The notes under the pieces are model-generated. The model ran no database searches. It was not told where the DNA came from and saw only the letters and a program-made list of their open reading frames with translations. From positions 285,010-349,009 of the forward strand of contig NW_002060960.1 of assembly GCF_000150275.1 (NCBI RefSeq): a stretch of DNA of 64,000 nucleotides. The letters are read 5' to 3'. Origin of the DNA: Trichoplax adhaerens (Eukaryota > Animalia > Placozoa). Position 1 is the stretch's first letter; every line of letters begins with the position of its first letter. Position numbers and translations under genes: made by a program. Shown one piece after another: positions 11,732 through 64,000 of the stretch.

Positions 11732-13892
11732 TAGTAGAAGTAAACATGCTACCTGTAGTGTAATAATAGCTAAGTTTTAATACTAAAATATACTTTAAAT
11801 ATGTAGTGTACGAAGTGTTATATTACAGAAATAACCAATCTTGATATTTTTATATTAAGTTAGTATTGGAGACGATCTTTCGCACTTCAGATAGTGAGCA
11901 ATGATCGATGCATTTGTAATAGAAATAGCAAGAAATTGTAATTTTTAAAAGACTTTATTTTAGGATTATTATTTTCCATAGCCTAAATTTAAGCATTGGT
12001 GGCCATTATACAATGTTCGAAATTATACAACGTGTACATAGTATATCCTAACTATATGAAATATTAACGGTGGCCTTGATGACTGTATAACGCTAAAATA
12101 TCAGCATTTTTTATTATTTTAATCATTGTGAATAAAAACGTCGACTAGTTGATATTTTAAGTAAAATGTGTTTATTATCTTTCGTTGTATAAGAAGTTAC
12201 AAAAGGTAAAGACCAGGTTAATTTATCATGGAAATCGCGATTCATTAACACTAAAAGTTGTACAGCGATCGCAGCCAATTTAACGGTAAATGTGTAATAG
12301 ATGTATCTCAGCGTATGAGAAATGAAGTTGTAATAAATTCATTCGTAGTAATTTTTAATTGCAGGAAGTTCTAGAAAAGTGATAATTACACATTAGCTGT
12401 CAGCCATTACAAAATCTTTTTCTATCAATCAATTACCTTTCCGCTTTTGCTTGCAATATTTTGATTAGGATTTCTTCAATTATAACAAGTGTCAGGCGAC
12501 TAACCTAGCTAGGCTAAACTATAGGAAAATTATTATTTTAGAGAATTGAAAATCGATTTTAATAGTACCACTTATATTTCATCACTAGAATTTTCCAATA
12601 ATATTGTTATAATTTTTTTAACTGAATTAGTTATAATGGCTTTAAAACAGTAAGCAGGATTGGCCACGTTAGGAGACTTTTATTGTGTCCTCACTTTACA
12701 AGGTGATGACAAAGACAATCCCCCTTCATGTTTATTTATAAATCTCTATAGAATAGTTTAGGCTTGCATAATTAATTACTATATTATGCCAAAAGGATCC
12801 ATAAGCTACAATTATTGGTTCAAGGCTAATTACGTAAAATACTTTATGTCAAAAGTCTCTTGTATTTATCTAGAATTATCAAATAGCCATAAGACATAAT
12901 AACCTTATACCTTCTAGGCGTAATGCGTCATATTATGCCTCTTTAGTATAGATTGATATCTTAATACCGAGAAAATATTAAACAATTTCTATGCTAAAAC
13001 ATTGTATTGCTGTGGTTTATTTTTGATAGACTAAACTTCCTACTTCTAGTTCCAACTTCTTATTACAATAGACCTTATCGGCGGCTATCGTAGATAGAAA
13101 ATTCCCACCTTATTAATTAAACTTTTTTGACCCAGTGGGATGAGTTTTGATCGTTCTATCTAAACGGTTTAGTCAAGTGCTAACTAGAATTAAAGCAGCT
13201 GCGATTATTTTCATAATGGCTACAAGATCGTTGTACTTATAAGGATTTATAAGTATAAATACTTCCATCCTCCTTACAAAGTTGGTTTCGTCTTTTCAGC
13301 AGAGTAGATTACAGTTAATTCATAGGTTTGTTAATGTCAGTTAAGAAATGTACTGTAAATTTTCGTATATTACATCTACATAAACGTACAAGTTTAGATT
13401 AATTTAAGTGTAGCTTAATTAGGCATTACGAAGAAGAAATATTGCCCGTGTTGAAGTGTATTAATAATTCATAGACAGGATGTTTAATTCTCTCAGAATC
13501 TTTAAATGTAATGATTTTATTCTTTTTATTTATCTTCATGTTACTATTTTATCAGTAATGCTTGGTTCAGTAATTTTAATTACAATATAATGATTTTTTT
13601 ACACAATAATCGCAAGCGTACTATTTTTTACAGAAGCATGTAGGAAGGAGTAACGAAATTTTGTTGTTTATGATAGCACTTAGCTTTAGAAAAGCTTTAA
13701 AATGTTGATAAATCGAAAATTTGATTCCTAATTCTTCCAATATACTAGGGCATCCCTGATTAACATTTGACAAGCTCAAACCAGATTCTACTTTATTTTC
13801 ACTCGAGTAATGAAGCCGATAATTGTAAGAATCGGTGAACTATTTTTCAAAACTAAGATCTGCTAGATTCGAATAAGAATCATTTAGCTAAC

Positions 13893-46338: not shown

Positions 46339-49300
46339 ATATTCTAAGAATTAGTTCTTCTGTTTATTCATATATGTATTCTAAGTTAGAACTTTATTTC
46401 TTGTGTTGCACTTATAAGCAACTTATATGTTAGGGTTATACGAACATTTTATGTCCGTAGTAACATAAATTAGGCTACTGATATCTGCAACTTCAATTTG
46501 TATGGTATGTCGAGATGAAATAGGATTTAACGATGACTCTTAGTTGACAACTTTTAACTTGTAAACTTGCTTGCATCCATAATTTTATATTCTGCATTAG
46601 CTATATGTATATCTTAATGTTATAGATATCATAACTTAAAGTATGTTTACAACAATGATCGAGATGCAATAATAATATAAAGTGATTGTAATAAGACAAT
46701 AAATTGTTTGTTTTTGTATCGGTACAGTTACTACGAGATGAAATCAATAAGACCTTCTTAGTATAGCGCAAAAACGGAACAACTAATGTAAGATGATAAC
46801 CCAAAGTGTAAATCATTTGACATTTTCCAAGTTATCAGTTAGTGCAACATCTTGTGTCCCAGGTATAAGAGAAGCTCGAATAAATTGTTACTATTTTTAT
46901 TATATTGACTTAGTTCTATAACTCCAACGCCTAACTTACTCATTGTACCTTGTTGTTATTCAATCGGTTATGAAATCTATATCCCTTGCTCTGTTGTGAA
47001 CGTTAATTATGATTATTACTCTCATGTTCTCTCCAGTTTATTTTTATACTGTAGTACTACTAATAATTGCCGAAATCGAGTTTAAGCTGAATGTTGCAGA
47101 AAAATTTAGATAGATTAGAGTAATGTAAAATGAAATGCACTGTTGAAGTCTGCTCAAAGTTTTTAGTACGATAATAATTAATTTGTCAATTAGTTGATGA
47201 CTACAGAATATCTTGATGGTGATACTTTGCATAAATATGTTTGTACTTTTGCTGTAGCTTTTAGGGCTTTGACTGATGCTTTATTAGAATTAGATTACTG
47301 TACCGCTATTATATATGTATGGCCTTGTATTAAAGAAAGGAATATATAATATAACATTCAATTCTGAAACTCTGGCGCACAATAACTGTAATCTACATTT
47401 AGTAGTTATATATCAAATATAAGTTCTTACATGTGTCCATTGTATATCGGCGTCTTTAAATTTTTCTGACGTGTACATTATTTTCATGTTATGCTCGATA
47501 TATACTTTTATGCCAGTTAATGTTTACGGTTGCTTTAACTGTAACGTTAGTGTTCAACAGTTGATACGTCAGCAAACCTTAATATAGCTCTAGTTTTAGC
47601 TAAATATACTTATTAGAAAAGATATTAGATAAAACGACTAAATTCTCGAAATTGCCCATGGTTATATTTTACTGACGTCTGTGATTACAACGAATCATTA
47701 TAGCAATATTCGAGCTTATTTTAGGAGCGCATACATTACGCTATGTATTATTATTATTAGCCCGATATTACGGTAAACTATTTAGAATTTAATGCACGAT
47801 AACCTACAAAAATCAGATGTGAGCATGGATATTTAAAAACTCAACGCTAATTTCATTAATGTATTATTTGACCAATTTTAGTCTTCTAAGCTTAATTAGT
47901 ATGTTAATGCTTAAGAATTTTGTACAGACCTTTACTTTTACAGCCCGTATCTAGTATAAGTTGATTGAACTCAAGCTTTAATTTTCCGAAATTTGGCGAA
48001 TAATTATATACTCGCATGATTAGAATATTGCCTACTTGTGATACTTAGCATAGTTTTTTACTGAATAGAATACAGTATTATAATATATCACTTCGCTTAG
48101 CTTGATATACGTATATTTGATAAATTCTCGAAGTACATTATTATAACTTAAAAAATCCGTCAGAATCTTTCAATATTGTAGTCGATATCTAGTTGTATAT
48201 TTATGCAAGTTCTAGCACATTGTAATAAATTGGATCCGTTTCAGTAAAATTATGTCCGAGTTTAATTCTTGCATCATTGATTATATTGCACGAGATTAGA
48301 GAATAAGGAGTAATAAAATGGTTTATCATTATGAATGCAGATATCATGATAAAGGAATACACCATTGCACTCATTGTCATCTCAAAGCTCCTGTAATGTA
48401 AGCTACTATACACAATATAGATTACTAAAATACCTTAAAATTAACGAAACTAAATAAAACTTTGTTATATAGAATATATGATGGCTTAGTGATTTTTTAC
48501 AATTTTATTAAGCGAAATATGACTAAAAAAAATCAAAGACGAATGCAGCATACACGGCATTCTATTGCTCCTGTAAATCACACTTTATTGTGCACCGCAT
48601 AGTATCTGATATAGCGTGTTCAGTAGATGATAAAAGCATAAATAATAACTTAAATGTGATTAGGAAAAGTGATTTCCTTCAAGCGGCGTCAATTCAAATA
48701 TTAGTTGCAAATTTGAATGTTTAGCAAGCCTTGCTGATACATTGTCTGTTTCGTGTTTTTAGTGAAGTAATACTACTGTAGAATTATAATGAACCCTGCG
48801 TTATAGGAATACTGACAGGGATGAATTTTCTTACAGGTTTATATTCTCGAGCAGCTCGACTATTACTCAAATGGGTACATAAATAAAGGGATTTATATTA
48901 ATTTATTGAATCATTTTTTATAATATATTGGTTGGTGAGTCAGTAAGAACGAGAACTTCAAAATACATAGAAGGAGTTTACTGTCGCAGAGATTGAACTG
49001 ACTAGCAATCAGATAGCTGCAATATAACAATTACAAATCAGGGATAGTAGGGTCGCGAATGGCTGAGAAACTAAAGGTATAGAATTAAAACAGAGGCCAA
49101 GATAATTATTCAGAAAACACACATACTACTGTATATAGAGTTCAGGACACTCACATACGTTAGACATCTTAAGATGAAAATATGACAACACTAGTTAATA
49201 CGCTATTTTGATCTTATCAAGAGGTATAATCAAAGTGGTATCGTTCAATAAAGCAAACATTACAAATATAGCATTAAACTTTAGTCATAACAACAGTAGA

Positions 49301-49755
49301 GTTCAAAAACAAACATAATAAATAATTTGCTATGATGAATTAAACATAACACTACATGTAACGCAGCATGTGGCAATTGATCATGACACTTTTTCAAATT
49401 TTCTATCCTAGACTATGTACTACTTTGGGTAAAAGTAATCTTTGAATTTGAAAGTAAAGCAAATTGATCTAGATGGATTGCATTATATTAATACCCACAT
49501 ATGTTTGGTAGATATCTATATGGAATTAAGCCTTTGAGCTATTTAATGTTACATGTGATATAAAATATAGCGCGCTAATATCAGTATTAGTATGTGTCGT
49601 TTACTGCTATCATCGTTTTCAAGCCGTATGATAATACCAACACTTTCTACGGGATTTTCGAAAGCAATCAAATGGCGAGGTGCTATGTGATTAAATAGTG
49701 ATTGCACCTTAACTCAGATATAGTAGTAAGGAAAGATTATTAAAGGAATTATCAG

Positions 49756-52700
49756 TTATAAATATTGAGATAAAAGTGCTAAATTCGATGCTAAATCAGC
49801 TACTAGTGCTTCTCTCTCTGCTATTGATTGAGTAACTTGGCTTTGAAGGTCAGCAACTAGATTTTAAAAGAATGAAGTCGGTAATTGAGTACACTATAAA
49901 ATATTAGTATTGCATTCCATCATACATCTGATAGGAGAAATGTGAAAATTTTTATTACGTAACCTAGGACATTACGATTAGGTATTCAAAGCTAAAATAT
50001 TGTAATTATTTCTTACATCTAGAAATACGCATGTATTCTATATCATTGATTTTAAAGTTACCGTACGTTTTTTTAATGAATGGGAATTTGTGTTAAGGAA
50101 TTGAGACTATAATTAGTAAATTGAACTATGCAATCTTAGAACATTACGGCACAGTAAACTGCAAGCCTCTCTAGACAAACTTTATTACCATATTAACTAG
50201 TTTGTAGTCAATATACGTAAGCATTAACTATAATTATCGGTATATATGATTGATCATGTTATGAGAGCTTTACCGTAATCTAGTAAATGCATGAATTAAG
50301 ATCAATACTGATACTTCCTTAGATAATTTATCCTATAAAAATTGCTGCATCTACTATGTAAGAGTTTTTTCGTGATAAATATATTATTATTATAATCAGA
50401 TTGAGCAGTCGGTTCATGAACGTAATTAATTTTTCCAGAACTTCTCCATGCTATAAATAATTGAAATTAGTCTATCGGCTTTTATGGATGACAATTAACT
50501 ATTCTTATAGATCGTCATGCTACGAAACTATTTCATAGAATAGAATTACAGAATTGGTTTTCCAAATATTCTTTATGAGTACCAAATTACGTAGTCAAGA
50601 ATGACTTACCCACTCATGAGTTGCAATCCATGGATTAATTATGCTTCTATCCAGTTGATGGTCCATTTTGGGTATACAGAAAGCAACTAATTCATCGCAC
50701 AACTGCGCTAAGCTTTTTAAATCTTTTCTTAACAAACTGAAGAGATCAGGAAATTGTAAGGTATCCTGATATATTTTAGTTGAAGAAAAATTTCCAAGCA
50801 GAGCTGTAATATTCATGCCCTAGTTATAATAGTGCATCGATAATTATTGTGTTTATATGTAAAATAAAATTAAAACTTGGATTATGACTGGTTATACAAT
50901 GGTTATCTATCTAATAATCCAAATTGAAGTTTGTAAGGTAAAAGTAAATATAGCGGGTTTATCGTTAAGCCTGTCTAGAAATTACGACTTCATTTGATCG
51001 GCTATTGCCGGAAGGCACAATAACTAATTTTTTTTCAGTCAAGACTGTATAACTTCAATTCAATTATAGCTATAAAAATCTAATGTGTAAGTAAGCAATC
51101 CTATACTTAGTTAGCTTATATACCTCCTCAAGAAGAAGTAAGATCAGCAGATCTTTACGAATATACTATATAACCTTGCCTAGGGGATAAATTGTTTCGC
51201 GACTACTAGATAAAAGACTCTTTTCATTTTCCGTTCGATAGAAGTAAATGTAGCACTTGTCAGAGATTTTATTAAGCTTGCCGAGCTTGTTCATTACTGT
51301 GACTACTAGATTAAAGGTTCTTTTCATATTTAATTTCAGGTATGAAAGTGCATCGAGCAATATGCCACCGTGTTCAGCAGGTTATAAAATGAACTTGCCT
51401 AATACGTGATAATTTCAGAGCAAAAGCGACTATGCTACTCTAGTTTATTATAGAAATAAATCACCTGGCTGGGAATCGAAATATATATATTGTCTTTACT
51501 AATATTGCCATGAATGATTGAATAACGGCGCAGCGACTTGATTGCTTTTTCGGTATCTTGCATGATTCTTCTGACATTTTCAGCAGTCAGATAATGAGAT
51601 TGGCTATGGATCATATCACTTAGGATCTTGATATCATTTTCTCGTATCTGGTAGCATACAATCCTAATAATCAAATGCTAGTATTCATTCACTGTATCGG
51701 ATCAACTTACTGAATGAAAAATCAGTTTTTAAACTGTACAATAATGACTACAAACACTATAATTCCCGTCTATCGTAAAACATAACGTGAATATAATATA
51801 CTGGATACACGCAATTCACACTCTTACAGTTTGTTTTTGAGCTGTCTAATGTTTCCATTTGTTTTAATTTTGCATTTATGATCTGTTAAACATATACATG
51901 GGACAATGTTATCCATCTGCCAGTTTCGTAATTTGATCGTGCAATAAAAATTTTTCTCGGTTTCCCATTGCTTCTTTTCCTTTCTGTCGTAATACTTGAG
52001 CCAGGTAGGAATACCATCGGGATCATTTTGACCGAATATTTTGGCTTTATAAAATTCCTAGGTATCGTTATAAACATCGTTAATTGTATAATTATTAATC
52101 TATGTTATATTGGATTGAAAATACTGCTAGCATGTTTCTATATTATCTAGCTAACTGTAATAAGGCCTATTCCTATTTCTACACTAATGAAGACCAGTCA
52201 AAAATTATTTCCAAATTTAGCGAATACAAACAGTTTATTACTGAATATTTATCGCTGGAATGTAGTAGTAATAAGTAGACAACGCAGCTTGTATACCGCT
52301 AGATTTCAGACTGGCTTCCCTCCAATAGGAGTTAGCAGTCTTTCATAGTCTTACAAAAGTGTTAGCAAATAGATTTATCGGATACTCTTATTGAGACATC
52401 GAGTCTTTTCACTTAGAGTTATTGATAGCGACTCTATTTTATCTACGTGTAGGTATTTCATGATCCTTTCGTCTACATGGAACATTCCTGACACCGCCGA
52501 TCCTGTCCAGACCTTCGTTGCCAGCTTACTCTTAAGTTACAATAACTTTCTTACAAACAATTTATTCTAGCTTCATCGTTTAAGAATGGGTTATATTTAA
52601 CTTAAGTTAGATCCAATAATTTCAATTTTATCTCATAAAGCTTTGATTTACAGCGACATTAGAGCCACTTAATCGTCGCTATAGAGGAATTATAGGCTAC

Positions 52701-55700
52701 AATTTTAATTATCGAACAGTGTAGTAAGATTAAGGAAGTGATGAAATGGATAGAAATTTATTATTGGTGAATATGTTGAAGCAATAATACACTATGAAAT
52801 TTCATGGTCAACGATGCAAATGAATAGAGCATGGCTTAGATACTTTCCATTGCCTGAAGTTTTGAGTATTTGCTAAGTCATCAGCCAGTAATTTGTTAAA
52901 TAAGCGTTTGTGATTAATCCCTTATTATTTTTGAAACGAGATGTTACAGTACATGCGATTTTCGGCCATTTTTTATATGCTTCAAGTATGGTAGTAAGCG
53001 AGCAATGTCTGTTCACTACGTTCGATCAGGCATTAAAATTTAAAATATCTACTATTATTATGAGTGCTCAAGGATAAAGAATACTGCATCAACAGAAAAT
53101 ATTCCACTTGCTATGTGCATTAATGTTTTATTAAGAAAATGCAATTTTTTAATATAAAAATAAAAAAATATTCTAAAACTTACAGACGAATTGGCAAGTA
53201 TCGACGAGGTTATGGTTAGCGATACTTTTTGAATGGAGCTGGTCGAATTACCTAATTAAAATTTATAACATTTATTATGCTTATGAAACAGAAAGGTTTC
53301 CTCCCAATTAACATTAGTCAAGCTAGGCCGTATCATCATCACAGTTATTGAATATTACTTTTAAAGTATTACTGGCATCATATTGCTGGCTATTCTGCGT
53401 CAAAATCCCTATAGTCTTATTAATTAGTATCCAGCTATGCTTCTACATAATTTCTTCAATAAATTCTTACTCACTTGTACTGTAACTCTCATTTTTGAGA
53501 TTTCGCTGCTCTTGCCTAGTAAACAAATGGATTGTAGCGAAACAACGTTGAAAATTTCTAGCAATAGTTCCAGCCTTATTTAAAAAAGTTTGCGTAAATA
53601 GGGTATACAAGATCGGATTAATGCATGAATTCATAGGTAAGGAGAGGATGGCTACGAATGGCATGGTATGGGTATCCAACTCAGAGCGAAGTAAACTGCC
53701 TATGAAGACGATATAAAATGGTAACCAGCAGGTAAGATCAGTTATGACGATTGTGATCATTTTCATCTGCATAATCTTATCCACTTTAGACATGGTATGA
53801 TTAGTATCTCGACGCGATTTCGTTAATGTGACAATAATTGTGATATACATGATGGTAATGATGATCCAAATGATAAGAGTTAGGCCGCAGTAAACTAATG
53901 ACCATACTAGTAGATAATGATTCTCTATGTTTCCCGGCAGGCAAGCACCATTATTACCATATAAACGATTTCTATATGGTTGATTAACGCTGTAGATTAT
54001 CGGTAGAGCAACAAATGCGACGAAAATTGACCATGATACCAACAAGGAAAGCACAATGTTACGATAGGATAAACGATAATTGGCAAATGGAAAGACCAAG
54101 AATAAGAAGCGATCCAAAGTGATAAGAAACATAATCATGGTCGACATGAGAGATGATATAGAAATCAGAAATGAAGATAATAAACAAATTGGACTTCGTA
54201 ACCAAATTTCATGAAATTCAGCAAAATTTCCAGCATAATAAACATCGGATGATGCGATGAAAATGAGATAGAATCCCATTAATAAATCTGCGACTGATAG
54301 ATTGATAACTAGCGTTGTAACGATATTGCTTTTCGCTTGGTTTCTTCCGTGCCAAATGATTGAAATAATATTACCAGTAATGGAGAATATGCTAATAAAC
54401 CAAACAAATGTTCGTAAAACTCCATGTGATAAAATATGAGTGCAAGTTGACAAGCTGAACTGATTAGGTAGTGGTTCGCATAGAAGTACATCTGCAGGCG
54501 CAATACAGCACAAGTATTCAAGTGTGGTATACCTATTTATGATTAAATAGACGAGTTTTAAGGCGATTATTGCATCAAGTCTTCAAGTATCATTTTATTG
54601 AATATTTTCTTGAACGAGAGTTATGAGCTTTATAAAATTTTTAACTAAACGACCGAAAGTGATGCTATACAGCGCTATAAATACATTGCTAAAAGATATT
54701 GTAGTTTCTATGCTAGTTTATACTAACTTGCAAAGTCATCAGTTTTGCGTTGCTAAAATCAAGTGCCATTTCGCTTGCTTTATGCAAGAAAAAGTGGGCA
54801 AAATCATTTAAAGCAACAATTTGGTTCAATTATGCTACGAAATTGTTATAATTTTTGGTTAGCGAAATTTTAAAATAGGTATATGGCGTATTCTGAACTT
54901 TGTAAACATTTGGGTTGGAATGCAAAGTAATAGAATACTTGTTATATGGAGTCTCAAATCCAACTATTGAGCAATGACTTAGTAAATGTCCGATTTTAAA
55001 GGTACGATATAAAAGCTTTTTTGAAAAAATATTGTATAACACTAAAAGAAATAACATCTTCTTAAATTTAAGTATATAGTAGGATCAAAGAAAATCCTCT
55101 AATTATGATCAGGCTAAGACGAATATAAATCTTTTAAAAGTATATTTTCATCGTTACGAGATATTCATTTAAAATTTAAATCCTATGCCATGCTGACACG
55201 ATTTGATTATGTAAGTTACGGCTAATATCATAAATTTAATAATATTGGAATTATTGTAATAGCAGCAATGTTAAAGGTCATTTTTGGGGGATACTTTCAA
55301 TATTATTAAATTCTCAGGTATTGGCCGTAACATGAATATCTGTACACTTCTTGGTTCGTATATTCATTTTTAGTCAAATCTGAAATCGTTAACATAATAG
55401 CAGCTTCGAGATTTTCTAACGTAGATTACCCTAAGAATAAAATTTTGCTAGCCCCTATTTACGTTACATTTACGGTACCGATTTTATACTCATGTTATTA
55501 TTGATTTGATCGTTAAAATCACTATCAATCATCCATCGCACTTATGATTCAATATTGAAAATATAGCAACTTTATAGCCGAAAGGTACCATTTTAGTACA
55601 AGGTCTTTCGATTGAAATATTATTGAAAAAAGCCCTAAAAGACTTACTATCATATAATAAATATATGTGTATGTATACGGGAATTTATTCAATATACTGT

Positions 55701-58700
55701 GAATAATAATGATTGCAACAGTACTCGCGTATAATATGGCATAAGAATTCTATGGGTCATCTTTTCCTTTCAATTGTGCAGCCTTAATAATAATAATTTC
55801 AAATTTCATCATTTCCAAATGACTTTGTACTAATTTATGTTTGCACTGCGTTGCGCAATATATTATTAGTCATCATTATGATGAAATACAAGTCTGCTTT
55901 GCTATCATAACATTATGGACATTCAATTAAAAGAGGACCTTGATTATAATTTTAAATTAATATCGTATACAGGACGGTATAGAAAACTTCGAAAAAATAT
56001 CGCTATAAATATTGCAAGTTGAGACGTAAGAATAAGTAACTTACAGTGAATTTAGATATCTAGAGCCAACAAAGGAAAGTTTAGTAAACTCCAGTACTGG
56101 ATTGTTTCTTAAATTTCTGATGAAAAAATCCGCAGTAATTATTGATGTTATCATTTCAATTTTCAGAAGCGTTGGAAACCTTTATCAATTTTTGCCTTAA
56201 TCGCTCACCATGCTGCTATAATTTTATACCAATTCAAGTTGTAAACTTATAAATTTATTATTCTACGCTTACAATATATATAGATGTGTAAATATTAATA
56301 AGCAGCGTGGTCCTATTTGGCTTATTCGGTTGTTTGCAACATTTCTAAAATATATCAAATAAAAACGTTTGAGTTTAGTAGTCAGTTTATTACCGAAAAA
56401 TGTTGTCTGTTGCTATATTTCAAGAATGTATGCTTATTAGCTCTGGCAATTATTGTCAACATATTAGTAGCAATAAATTTAGATGTTAGCTAAATATAAG
56501 AATAATCTATGTAAGACTGTCAATATTAATGCTAGCTGTTGGTTTGCTTTGTACACTGTGAATAAATATACTGCAAAATCTAATTTATGAAGCTGACAAA
56601 ATAAGATAATTTTAAGTATACATGCAATTTAATCTATGAATTTGGTAGATTCGTCACAAAACCGCTTTTGCAGTAAAGCAACCTAGTTTGCAATTCAAAT
56701 GTCTCGCTCCCGAAACGCCTATTAGGGGAAAATATCTGCTCTATCATGACAGAAATAACACTTCAATAAAAAGAAATTAAACAATTTATGATCTAGGTCA
56801 AACGTGGGTTCTCGAAAAGTCTCTTTAAAGCTCAATATATGGCGGGTTGATTAACTTCTATAATAGTTTTGGAGTCCTAGTGAATACTGTGAATATTGGA
56901 GTTTTGCTATACGTTGGATAATGAATCTTAAATTATAGGTATCCAACATACAGATATTTAATTTTCACAGGAGATGTCCCACTACTGAGTACACAAATGT
57001 CCGTGATGTTGTTGGTGTCAAGAATCCTGCAACATGAAATTTAATTATGATAACCTTAAAATTATAAAGCACAAACAATGAAATTCAAATTTATGAATTT
57101 GTGATAAACTATCTTTGAAATACTGAAACTAGAACTATGGTATTTTTTGAAAACTTCATTTTTTACATAAATTTGATTCTTCTAATAAAACCAAGGAGCA
57201 TCAACCTTCGCTCATCTATTTATGATTATATTCAATTGTGTACATAAAAACTTCTTTTAACAAAATCACAACTTGCCAATTTTGTTAAACCTCTAGATCG
57301 ATCAAAAATTTACTATCGTACGATTTATTATAATTGTTCATAATTGATTCTAACTGAAGAGTCACGGTCAGTTCTTTATGATACTAATACTTAATACAAT
57401 CTAATACGTAGCTATTCAAAACATCGTAATATATGTATCATTGCAATAAACCTACAATACGGACCATAAATATCATCTGAAAATATATACTTGTACGATC
57501 ATGCAATCTAATGTGTAACCTAAACTATTTTCGTACAAAATTATAATTTTTATCATAAACCCATTTTTAGCGCTGCTCTACAAAACAGGTATATACGAAT
57601 AACTTAAATTTACTCACAATTCTTGCAAAGATTGTATGGCAATCAACGAAAGATAATCAGCCCTTTTAAGCTGATTATGACTTAAATGTCTACAAGAAAT
57701 ATGACGTAAAAAAAATTTACTTTAGACTTTAGAATTATAAATTAGTAAATGTATCATGTTTCGTATCTATTTTCCTTCATGCTATACTCCCATTTTTAAA
57801 GAATAATAGGATACTATACCAAATTACTTTTGAAGGTATAAGTCATAGAATTTTAATATTTAGGAATGTAAGATTAAAAGAAATGTTATACTATTCAGAC
57901 GCATATGTCTTAATTCTTTGTAAATCGTACAGTGTCTTCACGATTGCTGTTTGTCTTATAGCAATTTTATTCACCGACGTCAGGTTAGCGTTATCAATTA
58001 TGCTACAGATATAATTGGAATAATGTCAGATATGATCTGTTCATATGGTACTGATTAGTTTAATATTCAAATTTTGCTATTAGGGGTTGTATTATAAATT
58101 AGTCAAGAAACTTACAGCCGGTTTACTTGGTATGAACTCGTAAAAAGATTATGAGATAACTGATCAAAGGAATTGCCACTTAGAATTCTGTAAATTATGA
58201 TTTATATAACAAAGTCATTTAAATTTCCTTAGTATAATTCGTTTATAATATCTTAATTTTAAACATTTAAGAAATGGTACCAACATACAATTCATTGTAA
58301 AGGATTCTGCCGGATATGATATTCTGAAGTTTAGAAACTGAAAGGTTGGTAAAACTCAGATCCCTACATTACATAAATAAAAATATAGTGAAGTATAAAG
58401 ATTAGAAGAACTATTATATTAAAAAAATCAAATGGCAATAGCTATATTCCAATAGTTGATAACTCTTAATAGACTTAATTAATCTTAAAATAGTAATAGA
58501 TTAGCTTCCTTGGGGAGGATGTTTGAAAATAATAGTAAAATACGTTGCAATAATTATAGCAGAAAATAAAAAGTACATTTGGTAATATAAAACTTTCAGA
58601 AAAAGATTATTTTCATAATAGCAAATCTACGTTAAATTAAGTTACGAAAAGAAACTAACTTACAAATTAATAAGATTTTTGAGATCTTGCAATAGATTTT

Positions 58701-61700
58701 CGTTTGTTCCTCTCAAATTATTGCCTGTCAGATATCTGTCATGAGGTATTTCAAAAGTACATATCAAAAGTAATATTATCAGGTGCTTTTCAAAACATAT
58801 TTAATTAAAAAATCAAAACTATTCTACTTATAATTACTAAGGGTAAATAAGAATACGCAAGTAATTTAGAGATCAGCTATCACAAAGTTTATAGGTAATA
58901 AAATGGAAATTTCAGTGAAACTTCTTGTATTAGCTATTGAAATTATGATTCAATAACGTTTCATGATGGATTGAAAATCTTACGAATTAACTATATGCTA
59001 AATTATGTTCTACGGCATTTTTCATTATCATAGTCTTTTAGATAGATGATATGTATTTAAATTGAATTTTATAACTAGACACTAATATTGCATTTCGTAT
59101 ATACAGTACCGGAGAATACAGTAAGTATTATTTCACGTTGGTGGAAATTGATCAAAAGACGAAATACGCTAGCGGTGCATAACATTTAAATGACATACTA
59201 CAGAATCACATATTTGGTGGGAGGAATTTAGACCTTATAACTAATTCCAATGTTTATCTATCAATGCATTTTGTCTGATTAGATATAGTTATATAACTTA
59301 CAGGCCGTTTATGCGAGACACTACTTTAAAAAAATCATGATTAATGATTGATTTGTTGAAATTGCAGTTTCTAATATACCTAGCAAAAATTGTTTTATTA
59401 GTCATCTATTAGCAATTTTTACAGATATCCAACTGCGATAATAAATAGGGAAAATCGATTAAATTATTTAGCTGCAGTGTTGTTAAAATATCATAAATTA
59501 TAGTTGGAAAGGTATTCTTATTTGTAACCATAGCTATGCTATTATTACAAATTCATTAGTGATCCAAGGTGACTGAGAAATTGAAAATTGTCCAATTTCA
59601 AACTGTTGCTATTCTCTATCATGCTACAAATAAAAAGCGAATAATGCTTTAGGCATAGTAATTGTTATAGCAAATTTTACATTTGATTTTTGTAGTCGAG
59701 AAATTAATTGCTTACAAAGTTATTAGAAACTTAAGTTTGCTGATGGATTTTTCATGTATGTATTCCAAAGAACTACTTCCAATTTTTCTAAGTAGATCAC
59801 AATAATTATCAACTTAAAAAACTTGATGAATATAAAATTATACGATATTATGCAGCAGTAATCTACATCTCTTAATATAGTAAATAATCTAGTATTTAAA
59901 TTCGTATTATACTGTATAGCCTGTAATATAAATTACGGTAATTAAATCCAAGATATAAGAGAAAGTAACTATTTGATGAACTTTTATATTCCAGCCAGAA
60001 ATAACTAACAGGAGCCTTAATTGGATTTGGTTATTAAACGCATTTTCCGGAATTTTTGCAATTCTGTTTCCAGATATCCATCTATATGTTTAATGAAGAT
60101 AAATCTGAGTTTAATCTATATACCACAGTAATGCTAATTGGTGTCAATAAAACCTTTTACAAAATCGCTTAAGCAACTATATAATTGAAATTCTAAATTA
60201 TTAATATGGGACAACTTAATTACATATAATAAAGTCAATGTCAAGTATTACTATATAAATTACAGTTAAAGAATATTCATAGCGATATAAATAAGAGTAT
60301 ATCATTTAAGATTTTTCAACTGTGCAAACTCAGTAAAATACAAGTAGACAATATGAATGGCACCAACATGCAATGGTAGTACTATAATGATACAAAATAA
60401 TTGGACGATTGCATAAATTAGACTTGATGCTATGGATATCTCTATGCTCTTTCTTATTGTAGCAAGTCAAATTTTCCTTTATTAAGTAAATTAATTTATG
60501 AATTATGAACTTACAATTCCAAAAGCAAAGGAAGTCTCTTAAGAAGGCGTACTGATAGGATTCTTAATCGATTTCCAATTAAATTTCTTTCAAATTTCGA
60601 TATTTAATATGCTGTTAAACATACGTATTGCTTCTAGCCAAATATTATTATTTATGCAGATAGTAAAATGTTATATTAAATCAGTTACTATACTTACAAA
60701 TATTTGATGTTTGAATAGTCGCCGAATGCTTTTTCATCTATTTCCGTAAGTAAATTTAATAAGTTCATTAAATTTTGTAAATAATATAATGAAAAATTGA
60801 TNTCTAGCCGTAACATTAACTTTCCATATGTAAAATTCTTTTGTAATCTGCGGTCAAATAAGAAGAAAAGGAACTAACTTATGCTTACGATCGTACCACT
60901 TCTATATTTTTTTGTCATCTAGAATTATACTGCAGCTCAACAGCAGCTGGATCGTCTATATTATATTCAAATTGGTTTCACTGACACAAATTCAACATAT
61001 CAATAAAGCTATAGTAGGTTCTTCGCACTTTTAGACCTAATGATGAGCACGTTTGGCTATTTGACTTTTATGATTATTTGTACATTTTTTAAATTGTCAT
61101 TAAGTTTCGCAGATTTTGATGCTCCTCTATATTACAAAACTTGTCCTTACTTTATTCAGCGATATCGACACTTAAATCCACTTGGATATGAATGTTATAG
61201 TTTTTAAATTGCTTGATAACGCATTTACATCTTATGCTATTCTTATAAACTGGATGTGTAATTAAATATTGTACTTACATACTTTAGCAACGATTGCTTT
61301 AAGCATGTACTTACAGCTTACAGGTATTTTATTCGGTTAATAAAGAGATTTGCAGAGTTTTTAGATCTAATATTGTAGCCACTTTGTTAAAATAAAATAT
61401 CTTATTTTAGCAACCTACATTTTCTGTAATGAGATCACGTCTAGGAAAACTTTAGGCCCTAATGTGGAAATTTCATTGGAAGATAGATCTCTAAAATGTT
61501 TCATGATAGTTGATGATATAAATTTCTTATGATAACACCTAAGATAGGTTATTGTTATTCGTCTACCATAGGCTATTATAATGGAAATTTACGAGGAAAT
61601 TCAAACGTATACAAGTATAGATGATACCATATACTGTTTCAAATTAATTATATTTTATCTTTGTTGAGATACATTTTTACCTTAAACGTTATCGATTACG

Positions 61701-62069
61701 CAGTATTAACAGGTAATGGTATTTTCTCATTGCAGCATATAGTAGTTGTCGTATTATGTATAATGACTATTTACAACTTACAGTGATTTTAAATATATGC
61801 ACTCGGAAAAGTGATTGCGATGAAGACTTTGAAGTCTATTTCTAAAGAATTTCCTAGAAATAAGCAATAAACTTATGCCATCTATTGTAGATACTATTAA
61901 ATGTCGTCTAGAAAATACTGAAATGCCTATTGACGGCAAATAAAGAGGCAAGATTATGAGCATGTGATAAATGATATTCAATTGTGTTAAAATCACTTAC
62001 AGATATTCAAGACCAGTACCATTGCACAGATGATTTGGTAAACTAGCCAAACGATTTTCGGTGAGATCT
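49756..62069 (-). CDS. Leucine-rich-repeat GPCR (LGR, RXFP/GRL101-like) with a predicted C-terminal TKL-type pseudokinase domain; 5' end and extreme 3' exons unresolved
   Basis: About 17 phase-2 LRR exons of 69-78 nt between 56045 and 62069; 7TM exon 53475-54532; linker exon 53184-53251; kinase-like exons 51828-52057, 51465-51663, 50610-50819; candidate last exon 49756-49856. Confidence 0.7.
50610..52057 (-). CDS. Three exons encoding a kinase-fold (pseudokinase) domain
   Basis: 51828-52057 EFYKAKIFGQNDPDGIPTWLKYYDRKEKKQWETEKNFYCTIKLRNWQMDNIV (phase 0->2); 51465-51663 LIVCYQ..LSDMI..IIHGNISKDNIYI (2->0); 50610-50819 ITALLGNFSSTK..RKDLKSLAQLCDEL (0->0). All are AG/GT bounded, and the subdomains appear in kinase order. 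Confidence 0.75.
53467..54532 (-). CDS. Hinge plus class A 7TM exon of the LGR
   Basis: YTTLEYLCCIAP..FSLSTCTHIL..LRTFVWFISIFSITGN, INLSVADLLMGFYL, W..SPIC, ITLDRF, NGACLP, TDLTCWLPF, NSCINPILYT: typical LGR/relaxin-receptor-type 7TM motifs. Confidence 0.95.
56045..62069 (-). CDS. LRR ectodomain exons of the LGR (one LRR per phase-2 exon)
   Basis: Examples: 56045-56116 NLRNNPVLEFTKLSFVGSRYLNSL; 56273-56344 NVANNRISQIGPRCL; 57618-57689 HLSHNQLKRADYLSL; 58116-58187 ILSGNSFDQLSHNLF; 58664-58735 YLTGNNLRG; 60010-60081 WISGNRIAKIPENAFNN; 61419-61490 DLSSNEISTLGPKVF; 61782-61853; 62001-62069 DLTENRLASLPNHL. Confidence 0.88.
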
Positions 62070-62764
62070 CTATTTTGAATAAGAAAAAAGTTTCCCTATT
62101 AAGTTCTAAATTATGTAAGCACCGGATTATAATTTCATACAAATATTTGGCCACTATATAGCACTTTAGAGTAGCCTGCTAAGATTACTGTCTTTCGGTA
62201 TATAGCATTGTTACGGTGTTATCTCACCATTTGAATAGATTTACGTAATCTTAGCTAATGTGGTAGAACTGGTGATAACTTGATGTTGTTGTTTACTAAT
62301 TATTGTCGATATATGATCATGTTATGTTAAATGGATTGTTTGACAGTATCGGTAATATGTAATACTGATTACTATGACTTAATAGAATAATCTCATACTA
62401 TCTCTTAGTCGTAATCATGTGTAATGTGGTATTGAAGTTGTTTTGTTATTGTTATGTTCGATTATCATCGAGCCTTATAAAAGCGAGTGCGCTGCTCAAA
62501 AGGCTCTAGTTGTTGTAGTTGTTGTTGAAGAAATCGTTGTAGTTCTCCAGTTTGTAAGTCGTCTTTACTTAAAATAAAAGGGCGTTTAAGTCATAAGTTT
62601 GCTTAAGGACTTTTATCTTGCGTTTCCTTGCCACAAACAATTCCGGTTTGTGACAAGCATAGATATATATTAAAATGTGGTATTAGAGTTTTAGACTTGA
62701 ATGATTGTATGACTAAGAAAAATATATATTGATCAAATGATTTGAAAAACTGTCGAAAATAAGA

Positions 62765-62814
62765 NNNNNNNNNNNNNNNNNNNNNNNNNNNNNNNNNNNN
62801 NNNNNNNNNNNNNN
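62765..62814. other. Assembly gap (50 N)
   Basis: Run of N; a further single N is at 60802. Confidence 1.
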
Positions 62815-64000
62815 ATGCACCTATAGTTCAAGTATAGAATATAAGCTTCGTCATTTTAGACTAGCAGAGAACTATGATTGCCCTAATAATAAATCTAGAA
62901 TGTTTCTATTAACAATAGTTAATTTTGACTGATTAAGTTATAAAAGTCTAGGCAATTTGTTAAAAGAAAATTTAGAATTTAGAATAACTATAACTTTTTG
63001 GGACTAAAAACTAGGAACGTCAATTTAAATTGGCGTTGATAGTATTTCGATATCTAAGTGCATCGAATTACACCCTTCGAATGTATCTTTTTCTTATAAC
63101 ATTGCGTTTTTCATTCCAATGTTGTATATTAATTAACTTAAAAATTAATAATAATATTTGAGCGATATAGTATGTATTTTTTACTTCATACTTAAACATG
63201 TTAAATTAAAGACACTTATACAAACATAATTCTTATAGATTGCCGCTCAGCTTGATGTGAATTTTTTAAGGAATGAATGAGATTTTTGGAATAGTCACTA
63301 GAAATAAATAATAAACAGTCACTACAGCATAGAAGTTAATATAATAAAGTAAAATATTAGACATTAGTACTGTTTCAACAGCTTGAATATCGAAATTTAT
63401 TAAATTTGAATCTATTTTTTATAGCATAGCTTCGATGATATTACTAAGATTTAAACTAAGCATGTACGCAAATAAAAATCATCTAGTTGACATTACTCTT
63501 CGCCAGTTTTATATTTCTAATCGGTATTCGTACCAGTGCAGATTTTCTTGGCATGATTGTAAGGTCTACTGCATTATTATCTAGAGTAATAATTCTATGG
63601 ATCTTGTTTTCAACTAATAGGCCAATAGTTGATTGCTGATCATCAAAATCGAAATATAATTTTTTTGTCGTGTGTCACAAAACAGCTTTGCAACAAGATA
63701 ACGCAATATACGATCAATAAGTCAATTCCTTGAACCACGTATCAAGGAACGATATCTGTACTATCACAAACACTTTTGCTCTACTAGAAGACTACACAAA
63801 GACTTAAACGCCTCGTATTTTACGTTAAACACTAAGCTGGAGAATTCACTTTATTTCACGATATACTGCATTTATATACTACTCCTCAATAGTTCATGAG
63901 TCATAGTTAATACAATTAACATTAGAATCATTTACTGAATTAGATATTAATTTTAGCTACTGCTCCCTTAATGCAGACAACAGTATTTACGAACATAGAC

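Follow-up and report, generated by a model that had tools for sequence, protein, structure and literature searches.

The 3' portion of a receptor gene in Trichoplax adhaerens was found to encode, in one mRNA, leucine-rich repeat (LRR) ectodomain exons, a rhodopsin-class seven-transmembrane (7TM) domain, a Ser/Thr-rich linker and a kinase-like tail. The stretch of DNA analysed (the window) is 64,000 nt of contig NW_002060960.1 (285,010-349,009). All feature coordinates are on the scale of the window, and the gene lies on the minus strand. The region makes up the 3' third of a very large gene for a G protein-coupled receptor with leucine-rich repeats (LGR), of the GRL101-like, class A kind of G protein-coupled receptor (GPCR). 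We consider it highly probable that the product is an LGR-type GPCR whose transcript adds a linker and a catalytically dead kinase-like domain with a non-catalytic docking or allosteric role. A first-pass annotation made from the sequence had proposed that LRRs, 7TM domain and pseudokinase form a single product; this proposal agrees with the assembled contigs, which place them in one mRNA, and with the kinase fold obtained from paralogues.

Assembled contigs of four public runs (X5 to X8) were aligned to positions 49300-55200. Runs X5, X6 and X7, which belong to three separate studies, gave depth confined to exons and none over introns, and were taken as cDNA because their contigs are intron-less with canonical boundaries. 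Run X8 was taken as genomic DNA because it covers the introns. The contigs of X5-X7 skip five GT..AG introns exactly. One X7 contig (record 14, 1045 nt) passes from 54089 to the end of the 7TM exon, through the 68-nt linker exon, and on to 52056-51827 and 51662-51532, which belong to the first two of the three kinase-like exons (K1, K2 and K3); an X6 contig (record 9) contains the linker exon, K1, K2 and K3 together. The exons of the receptor are:

53475-54532, minus strand: 7TM exon, with the end of the Cys-rich hinge (YTTLEYLCCIAPADVLLCEPLP), transmembrane helices TM1-7 with DRF and NPILY, and helix 8; donor A/GTGAGT; the acceptor at 54532 and the donor at 53475 are used in X5-X7.
53184-53251, minus strand: linker exon, 68 nt, phase 1 to 0; 12 Ser/Thr among 23 linker residues; both junctions in X5-X7.
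51828-52057, minus strand: K1 exon, predicted kinase N-lobe, with the beta2-beta3 Lys in WLKYY, the alphaC Glu in WETEK and beta4 NIVPCICL; no glycine-rich loop.
51465-51663, minus strand: K2 exon, predicted beta5/hinge, alphaD, alphaE and catalytic loop, HGNISKDN in place of HRDLKxxN.
50610-50819, minus strand: K3 exon, predicted beta8, DFG-equivalent LLGNFSS, no APE, and an alphaF-like helix (DLKSLAQLCDELVAFC).
49821-49856, minus strand: last coding piece, 36 nt, LLTFKAKLLNQ followed by TAG 49823-49821; junction 50610 to 49856 in X5-X7.
55972-62068, minus strand: LRR exons, at least 10 with a single LRR each, the last ending at 56045 and spliced to 54532; the ectodomain extends beyond the window.

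The DNA of the window is AT-rich and the introns are short; its proteins agree at 100% with Trichoplax adhaerens records (TRIADDRAFT models). All five introns are GT..AG:

53474-53252, minus strand: intron 1, 223 nt, skipped in contigs of X5-X7; contains an in-frame TAA at 53469-53467.
53183-52058, minus strand: intron 2, 1126 nt, skipped in contigs.
51827-51664, minus strand: intron 3, 164 nt, skipped in contigs.
51464-50820, minus strand: intron 4, 645 nt, skipped in X6, with a matching loose end in X5.
50609-49857, minus strand: intron 5, 753 nt; K3 is joined to 49856 in X5, X6 and X7.

A mechanical open reading frame for the 7TM domain (54513-53467) is closed by the TAA at 53469-53467, 5 nt inside the GTGAGT donor. 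The context at the end of the 7TM exon is ACA A/GTGAGTAA, and the first-pass annotation had already noticed that this stop lies inside a consensus donor. The TAA is intronic because the spliced contigs join 53475 to 53251. The transcript runs past it after helix 8, from a donor 5 nt upstream, and uses five more exons. The exons follow one another in phase, and joining them from the 7TM exon onward gives a frame of 599 codons, 247 of them after the 7TM exon, with a single stop at its end. These 247 residues consist of the 23-residue Ser/Thr-rich linker and approximately 224 residues of kinase-like domain (K1, K2, K3 and the end piece). Four junctions had been predicted (53475 to 53251, 53184 to 52057, 51828 to 51663 and 51465 to 50819), and all of them are present in spliced contigs, along with a fifth from 50610 to 49856; the predicted Ser/Thr-rich exon with phase 1 to 0 and the in-phase chaining of the three exons after it were likewise recovered. 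Possible exons near 52530 and 50450 are unused in the contigs. The end proposed at 49756 was mistaken, as the TAA there is in another frame and in the 3' untranslated region (UTR), and a frame check of the joined exons gave TAG 49823-49821 as the true stop. Transcripts therefore pass the TAA, the K exons do not form a separate transcript, and the tail, as judged on paralogues, is kinase-folded. For this gene the public records offer a single model, P0159, a 7TM fragment of 268 aa.

The receptor portion was assigned by profile and fold searches. The 7TM exon matched Pfam 7tm_1 over positions 1-260 of 260 (95.3 bits against a cutoff of 30.5, E 5.7e-27), and its translation contains a DRY-like LDRF and an NPxxY-type NPILY. 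The closest public relative with 7TM and tail is P0151 (RDD36152.1, Trichoplax sp. H2), with 57% identity in the 7TM domain, a value shared with P0001, and 37-43% in K1-K3. A fold search with the whole P0151 model returned GPCRs only (TSHR Z 29.6, RXFP1 Z 29.2, C. elegans LGR Z 26.0), and LGRs fill its first 26 Foldseek ranks; the 7TM domain was called LGR-type because these receptors lead the matches. Source databases name the paralogues 'GRL101-like'. The LRR exon that ends at 56045 is spliced to the 54532 acceptor, as loose ends of X5 and X6 contigs map to 56045-56074. A tblastn search with paralogue LRR regions found LRR-like exons on the minus strand out to approximately 78.5 kb on the window scale (23 minus against 3 plus intervals), so that the earlier figure of about 17 LRRs is an undercount. 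Individual LRR units are split between exons. Runs of N (assembly gaps) occur at approximately 60797-60816 and 62713-62831 inside this region, and at least one LRR exon may be missing from the assembly. As in the LGR family (TSHR, FSHR, LHCGR, RXFP1/2 and GRL101), the long ectodomain has one LRR per exon and is followed by a Cys-rich hinge and a 7TM domain of rhodopsin type with DRY-like and NPxxY motifs; characterised LGRs, however, have short unstructured C-tails, whereas this receptor has a predicted folded kinase-like domain of approximately 224 residues and far more LRRs.

The kinase-like character of the tail was examined at the level of single exons, of exon families and of predicted structures. 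With the window K2 exon alone, Pfam Pkinase was matched with E 0.017 at profile positions 85-132 (14.9 bits against a threshold of 31.7), and nothing relevant was found in Pfam with the K1 or K3 exon. Family profiles were then built from paralogous exons (A1 for K2, with the window exon first, A2 for K1 and A3 for K3) and run against all PDB sequences. Every listed match of the K2 profile was a kinase once transcription activator-like effector (TALE) artefacts were set aside, the best being CDKL3 with E 2.9e-5. Approximately 20 distinct kinases, including MAPKAPK3, MST1, PAK1 and RAF1, fell below 1e-3; KSR1 and VRK3 lay slightly over that value, and all kinase matches were at the alphaD-alphaE-catalytic-loop position. 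The TALE repeat proteins had reached E 1e-19 by the summing of 15-18 weak matches of 'LTPEQVVAIAS' to 'LTPESILQI' (alphaD-alphaE), and were rejected. The K3 profile gave no match in PDB.

Structural comparison was carried out on public paralogues that carry 7TM domain and tail in one chain (P0151, P0188 and P0003/P0158), and on a tail fragment, P0157, which UniRef names 'Protein kinase domain-containing protein'. In the ESM Atlas, residues 385-641 of P0151 had a feature score of 0.97, and the best hits were kinases in 10 of 10 cases. The stored Atlas model of this tail superimposed on kinase clusters with TM scores of 0.58-0.65 over 189-206 residues. An AlphaFold model of P0151 (alignment A5) had a predicted local distance difference test (pLDDT) score of 73-93 over residues 400-600, and its elements come in the order of a pair of strands, a long alphaC, more strands, alphaD and alphaE, a beta hairpin pair, a helix of 39 residues and, at the end, one last helix. 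The preceding linker (residues 350-398) is disordered in the model, with pLDDT 30-44. A model of the P0157 tail, made with an alignment that included the window K2 and K3 exons (A6), reached pLDDT 74.5 and a predicted TM score (pTM) of 0.69. Kinases or pseudokinases made up all 50 of its best 50 matches with Foldseek (E 1.3e-3 to 1.2e-2), and again all 50 of the best 50 with VIA-align among 48,161 chains, of which 90 had Z of at least 8. Rad53 came out at Z 10.6 (root mean square deviation 2.1 over 93 residues), followed by TBK1 (10.2), RNase L (9.9), JAK (9.9), NFR5 (9.4), TGFBR1 (9.0), ACVR2 (8.8) and IRAK3 (8.8); STK40 and TNNI3K were also among the matches of the C-lobe model. The models of the paralogues thus show a predicted protein-kinase fold, with N-lobe sheet and alphaC, alphaD-alphaE, catalytic loop, beta7-8, an alphaF-like long helix and a shortened C-lobe. 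Identity of 35-50% across colinear exons suggests that the same fold can be carried over to the window gene.

The first-pass annotation had described this tail as TGF-beta-receptor-like on the strength of an alignment between the first kinase-like exon and the TGFBR2 N-lobe. The sole PDB matches of the K1 profile were indeed TGFBR2 N-lobes (residues 24-78), and the alignment is colinear over beta2-beta3-alphaC-beta4, including YKAKL. The E value of 6.5 is not significant. Against the 105.6-Mb, 1414-contig Trichoplax genome used for all own-genome searches, the K1 profile found no genuine kinase exon and no Trichoplax TGF-beta-type receptor exon; an additional match at C1412:807528 was a Lys/Glu-rich low-complexity frame and no kinase. 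TGF-beta/activin type II receptor kinases resemble the tail in the colinear N-lobe, and TGFBR1 and ACVR2 are among the C-lobe matches, but Rad53, TBK1, TNNI3K and JAK match the C-lobe as well or better. The label therefore remains a weak N-lobe hint, because no kinase group stands out in the K2 profile or in the structural matches. Of the PKc-like or tyrosine kinase-like (TKL) hit that had been expected, the fold searches with P0157 gave kinase matches in general and no TKL preference.

As had been read earlier, the tail keeps the beta3 Lys (WLKYY) and the alphaC Glu (WETEK), and has HGN in place of HRD, (G)NFS in place of DFG, and no APE; the GxGxxG loop is also missing. The catalytic Asp and the metal-binding Asp are thus both read as Asn. 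The HGN motif also occurs in JAK JH2 and in the kinase homology domain (KHD) of receptor guanylyl cyclases. Across the paralogues the alphaC Glu is invariant (13 of 13), the two Asp positions are retained together in none, a single Asp is retained in some (HGD in L004, GDF in L003 and L005), and the beta3 Lys is replaced in several (Ser in L002, Gln in L010-L013). Haplotypes differ at the catalytic-loop Asn (N58T). We infer from these residues, on good grounds, that the tail is a pseudokinase that would not transfer phosphate. An alternative is that it binds nucleotide and has an atypical or nucleotide-switched activity, in the manner of WNK, CASK and HER3, which would make the receptor a true GPCR-kinase. 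The retained Lys and the invariant Glu are what such an activity would draw on, as are the single Asp residues of L003, L004 and L005. It is nonetheless improbable, given the missing glycine-rich loop, the replacement of both Asp positions in the window gene and the failure of any paralogue to keep the two, the loss of the beta3 Lys itself in several paralogues, the haplotype-variable Asn, and the shortened C-lobe without APE.

The tail belongs to a family in Trichoplax. K1, K2 and K3 are colinear and open at no fewer than 15 other loci of the genome, with 30-50% identity. The K1 exon found 14 matches when used singly and 16 strong ones as a profile, and there are 19 paralogous K2 exons and 9 paralogous K3 exons. 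Identical scores for K1-K3 matches at C1288:2101-3276 and 11786-12862 and at C1394:309505-310680 reflect either a haplotig or assembly duplicate or a very recent duplication, and the paralogue counts are therefore inflated. The tail is already present inside the public paralogue records RDD36152.1, RDD45091.1 and XP_002116412.1. A homologue search with the P0151 tail region returned P0001 only, the reach of this word-index search being limited. Positions invariant among the paralogues outside the catalytic residues are W31, E34, F37 and N50 in K1; C3, L14, L25, I33, A40, S43 and I49 in K2; and L8, G9, F11, L40 and C48 in K3. The tail exons of the window have no stops and no frameshifts. Among the variants listed, K2 and K3 of the window have 6 synonymous and 4 non-synonymous changes against 7 and 10 in the 7TM exon, in a small sample. 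One paralogous locus, L016 (C1394:269202-269708), has stops in K1 (TAG and TAA) and in K2 (TAA), with frames open at all other loci, and is probably a pseudogene within the C1394 tandem cluster.

These data bear on a second alternative, that the tail is a decaying, functionless relic which is spliced on since the ancestral gene structure persists. Such a relic would be expected to have lost its catalytic motifs, as this tail has, and it would sit comfortably with the stops of L016 and with the increasing erosion of ambulacrarian and protostome versions to a C-lobe piece. We regard it as very improbable: frames are open and non-catalytic positions conserved in approximately 15 paralogues, LLG.FS and H-G/N motifs are common to Nematostella over a very deep split, the P0151 model is of high confidence, and synonymous changes are in excess in K2 and K3, small as that sample is. 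That the junction of 7TM and tail is an artefact, from a chimeric contig or the merging of two adjacent genes, is scarcely credible, since, although the evidence consists of assembled contigs in place of raw reads and of runs whose RNA label is guessed, identical canonical GT..AG junctions occur in three runs of three studies, the frame is kept over five introns, the order of 7TM then tail recurs in independent paralogue models and in four other phyla, and no plausible separate start is present for the K exons.

Relatives outside the placozoans were collected by a full HMMER scan with the 7TM exon, which returned 4702 proteins, and the tails of the best 150 of these 4702 were examined. In all, 12 tails matched Pfam Pkinase or PK_Tyr_Ser-Thr at the same profile positions (about 72-163 among the best 150). 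Tail scores of paralogues and relatives ranged from 12.8 to 24.4 bits, and only that of Glandiceps P0041 was above the gathering score. Tails with such matches outside the placozoans include:

Ptychodera flava (hemichordate), P0027 and P0059: sub-threshold Pfam kinase match in the tail.
Glandiceps talaboti (hemichordate), P0041 and P0087: PK_Tyr_Ser-Thr in P0041, 24.4 bits against 23.1.
Saccoglossus kowalevskii (hemichordate), P0060: sub-threshold Pfam kinase match in the tail.
Antedon (crinoid), P0053: sub-threshold Pfam kinase match in the tail.
Anneissia (crinoid), P0098: sub-threshold Pfam kinase match in the tail.
Holothuria (sea cucumber), P0061: sub-threshold Pfam kinase match in the tail.
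Nematostella vectensis (sea anemone), P0134 (XP_048584250.1, 3282 aa): PK_Tyr_Ser-Thr, E 1.5e-4.

Four further tails were matched by a broader K2 profile: those of Ptychodera P0130 and Antedon P0107, and those of two starfish, Patiria P0149 and Acanthaster P0144. Run against the tail of Nematostella XP_048584250.1, the placozoan K1, K2 and K3 profiles matched in order, at residues 114-156, 177-233 and 242-297, with per-comparison E values of 8e-5, 2.7e-8 and 3e-6, respectively. Closely similar motif pairs between Nematostella and the placozoans are IRAVLGGFSKAEKI and ITALLGNFSSTKIY, and VVHNAIS and IIHGNIS. Most ambulacrarian tails are reduced to the C-lobe piece; in Ptychodera P0027 an N-lobe-like stretch is present as well. 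In hhalign comparisons, placozoan and ambulacrarian tails aligned with a probability of 96.7% (E 3.5e-10), and ambulacrarian and protostome tails with 95.9% (E 5.9e-9). No Pfam kinase match was found in five protostome GRL101-like receptors (Lineus, Lingula, two from Mercenaria, and Dinothrombium), whose tie to the family is by profile-profile comparison only, and the GRL101s of corals and Aplysia have short tails without the module. Five of the relatives (P0134, P0060, P0059, P0087 and P0031) are giant mosaics of 1700-3300 aa, named 'uncharacterized protein', with MAM, CUB, C-lectin, F5/8-C, LamG, pentraxin, LDLa and LRR modules before the 7TM domain.

The first-pass annotation had suggested looking for 7tm_1 together with a kinase-like domain in other proteins, and the combination was found in approximately 15 Trichoplax paralogues, in Nematostella, in hemichordates and in echinoderms. 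The architecture is unique neither to the window gene nor to placozoans. The module appears to be old, with homologous tails, as judged by the profile comparisons, in Cnidaria and Ambulacraria and more eroded ones in protostomes. A tree built on 173 rows of 7TM sequence places every placozoan row that bears a tail, the window included, in one 28-row clade, with support of 100 in the Shimodaira-Hasegawa-like approximate likelihood-ratio test (SH-aLRT). One ancient origin of the tail followed by erosion and loss would be the simplest reading; it is plausible and not proven, because the tail-bearing receptors require at least 8 label changes on the 7TM tree.

On the usual view, class A GPCRs use short disordered tails and signal by way of G proteins, GPCR kinases (GRKs) and arrestins; a folded, kinase-derived domain on such a receptor suggests another route of output. 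In receptor guanylyl cyclases, JAKs and KSR, kinase-homology domains act as allosteric or docking modules. By analogy with these, the domain described here is most likely non-catalytic and would serve as a module for docking or allostery that is tethered to the receptor. When an agonist moves TM6/TM7 and helix 8, this movement may be passed through the linker, possibly phosphorylated, to the pseudokinase, which would recruit or release a cytoplasmic partner (an active kinase or other effector) beside or instead of G-protein/arrestin coupling. The linker, disordered in the P0151 model, is a plausible phosphorylation and arrestin site. A predicted homodimer of P0151 residues 396-641 (two copies) scored 0.02, which speaks neither for nor against dimerisation.

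Several points weigh against this reading of the window gene. Its tail was searched exon by exon, and the evidence for the fold comes from paralogues at 35-50% identity over colinear exons; taken alone, the window exons lie under every Pfam threshold, the best being the 14.9 bits of K2 against 31.7. The RNA label of X5-X7 is a guess, and their contigs are uninformative on transcript ends or abundance, so that support for the joined receptor reaches the transcript level and not the protein level. The 8 or more changes of the tail label come from a tree in which many gene models are truncated, and the docking role is reached by analogy alone.

Receptor-linked pseudokinases such as the receptor guanylyl cyclase KHD, JAK JH2, KSR, IRAK3 and NFR5 likewise have a kinase fold with replaced catalytic residues and are receptor-tethered or receptor-associated; they are found on single-pass receptors or soluble proteins, whereas the tail described here follows a 7TM domain. 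The tail family showed no specific affinity in sequence to KHD, JH2, KSR, IRAK3 or NFR5. Protist GPCR-kinase fusions (the oomycete GPCR-phosphatidylinositol-phosphate kinases, or GPCR-PIPKs, and Dictyostelium RpkA) also join a 7TM domain and a C-terminal kinase-type domain in one polypeptide. They have an active phosphatidylinositol-phosphate (lipid) kinase on a non-rhodopsin 7TM domain, in contrast to the predicted dead protein-kinase fold on a rhodopsin-class LGR in the window gene. A 2022 review of placozoan and cnidarian peptidergic signalling counts 46 Trichoplax LGRs, 41 of them non-canonical (PMC9545775); the window gene falls in this non-canonical expansion. That review treats LGR ectodomains only, and the word 'kinase' is absent from it. 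No such tail is mentioned by Roch and Sherwood 2014 (PMC4079206), by Veenstra 2021 on ambulacrarian GRL101 (PMC8286064) or by de Mendoza 2014 (PMC3971589). A search for literature on an LGR or GRL101 with a kinase domain, pseudokinase or kinase homology domain found nothing relevant, which does not prove absence; a conserved pseudokinase tail on an LGR-type GPCR is not described in the literature found. Since it scores under Pfam thresholds, the domain escapes routine annotation, and gene models of the placozoan LGR family need re-annotation.

The tail is kept in approximately 15 placozoan paralogues, can be recognised in receptors of cnidarians, hemichordates and echinoderms, and is eroded in protostomes. 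A more far-reaching proposal, offered tentatively and with considerable doubt, is that an ancient branch of LGRs signals through a built-in pseudokinase that couples the 7TM domain to a kinase cascade or scaffolded effector. Such a branch would predate the split of cnidarians, placozoans and bilaterians and would stand between GPCRs and receptor kinases. The module might derive from a TGF-beta-type II-like kinase, and would have disappeared or been eroded in the majority of bilaterians while staying intact in placozoans. The tail also provides a testable handle on the role of the large orphan LGR expansions in early-branching animals.

Downstream of the stop, the extent of the contigs carries the 3' UTR as far as 49405 at the least; it probably reaches 49300 or lower. 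The contigs extend at least 420-520 nt beyond the stop, and an ATTAAA is present at 49547; this may represent one long 3' UTR or an overlapping neighbour transcript. In run X5, two contigs cover the spliced segments 49405-49856 and 50610-50811, one identical to the window and the other with 47 differences, so that the X5 culture contains two haplotypes or strains. The X5 contig differences include N58T, at the catalytic-loop Asn, and I49T, both in K2.

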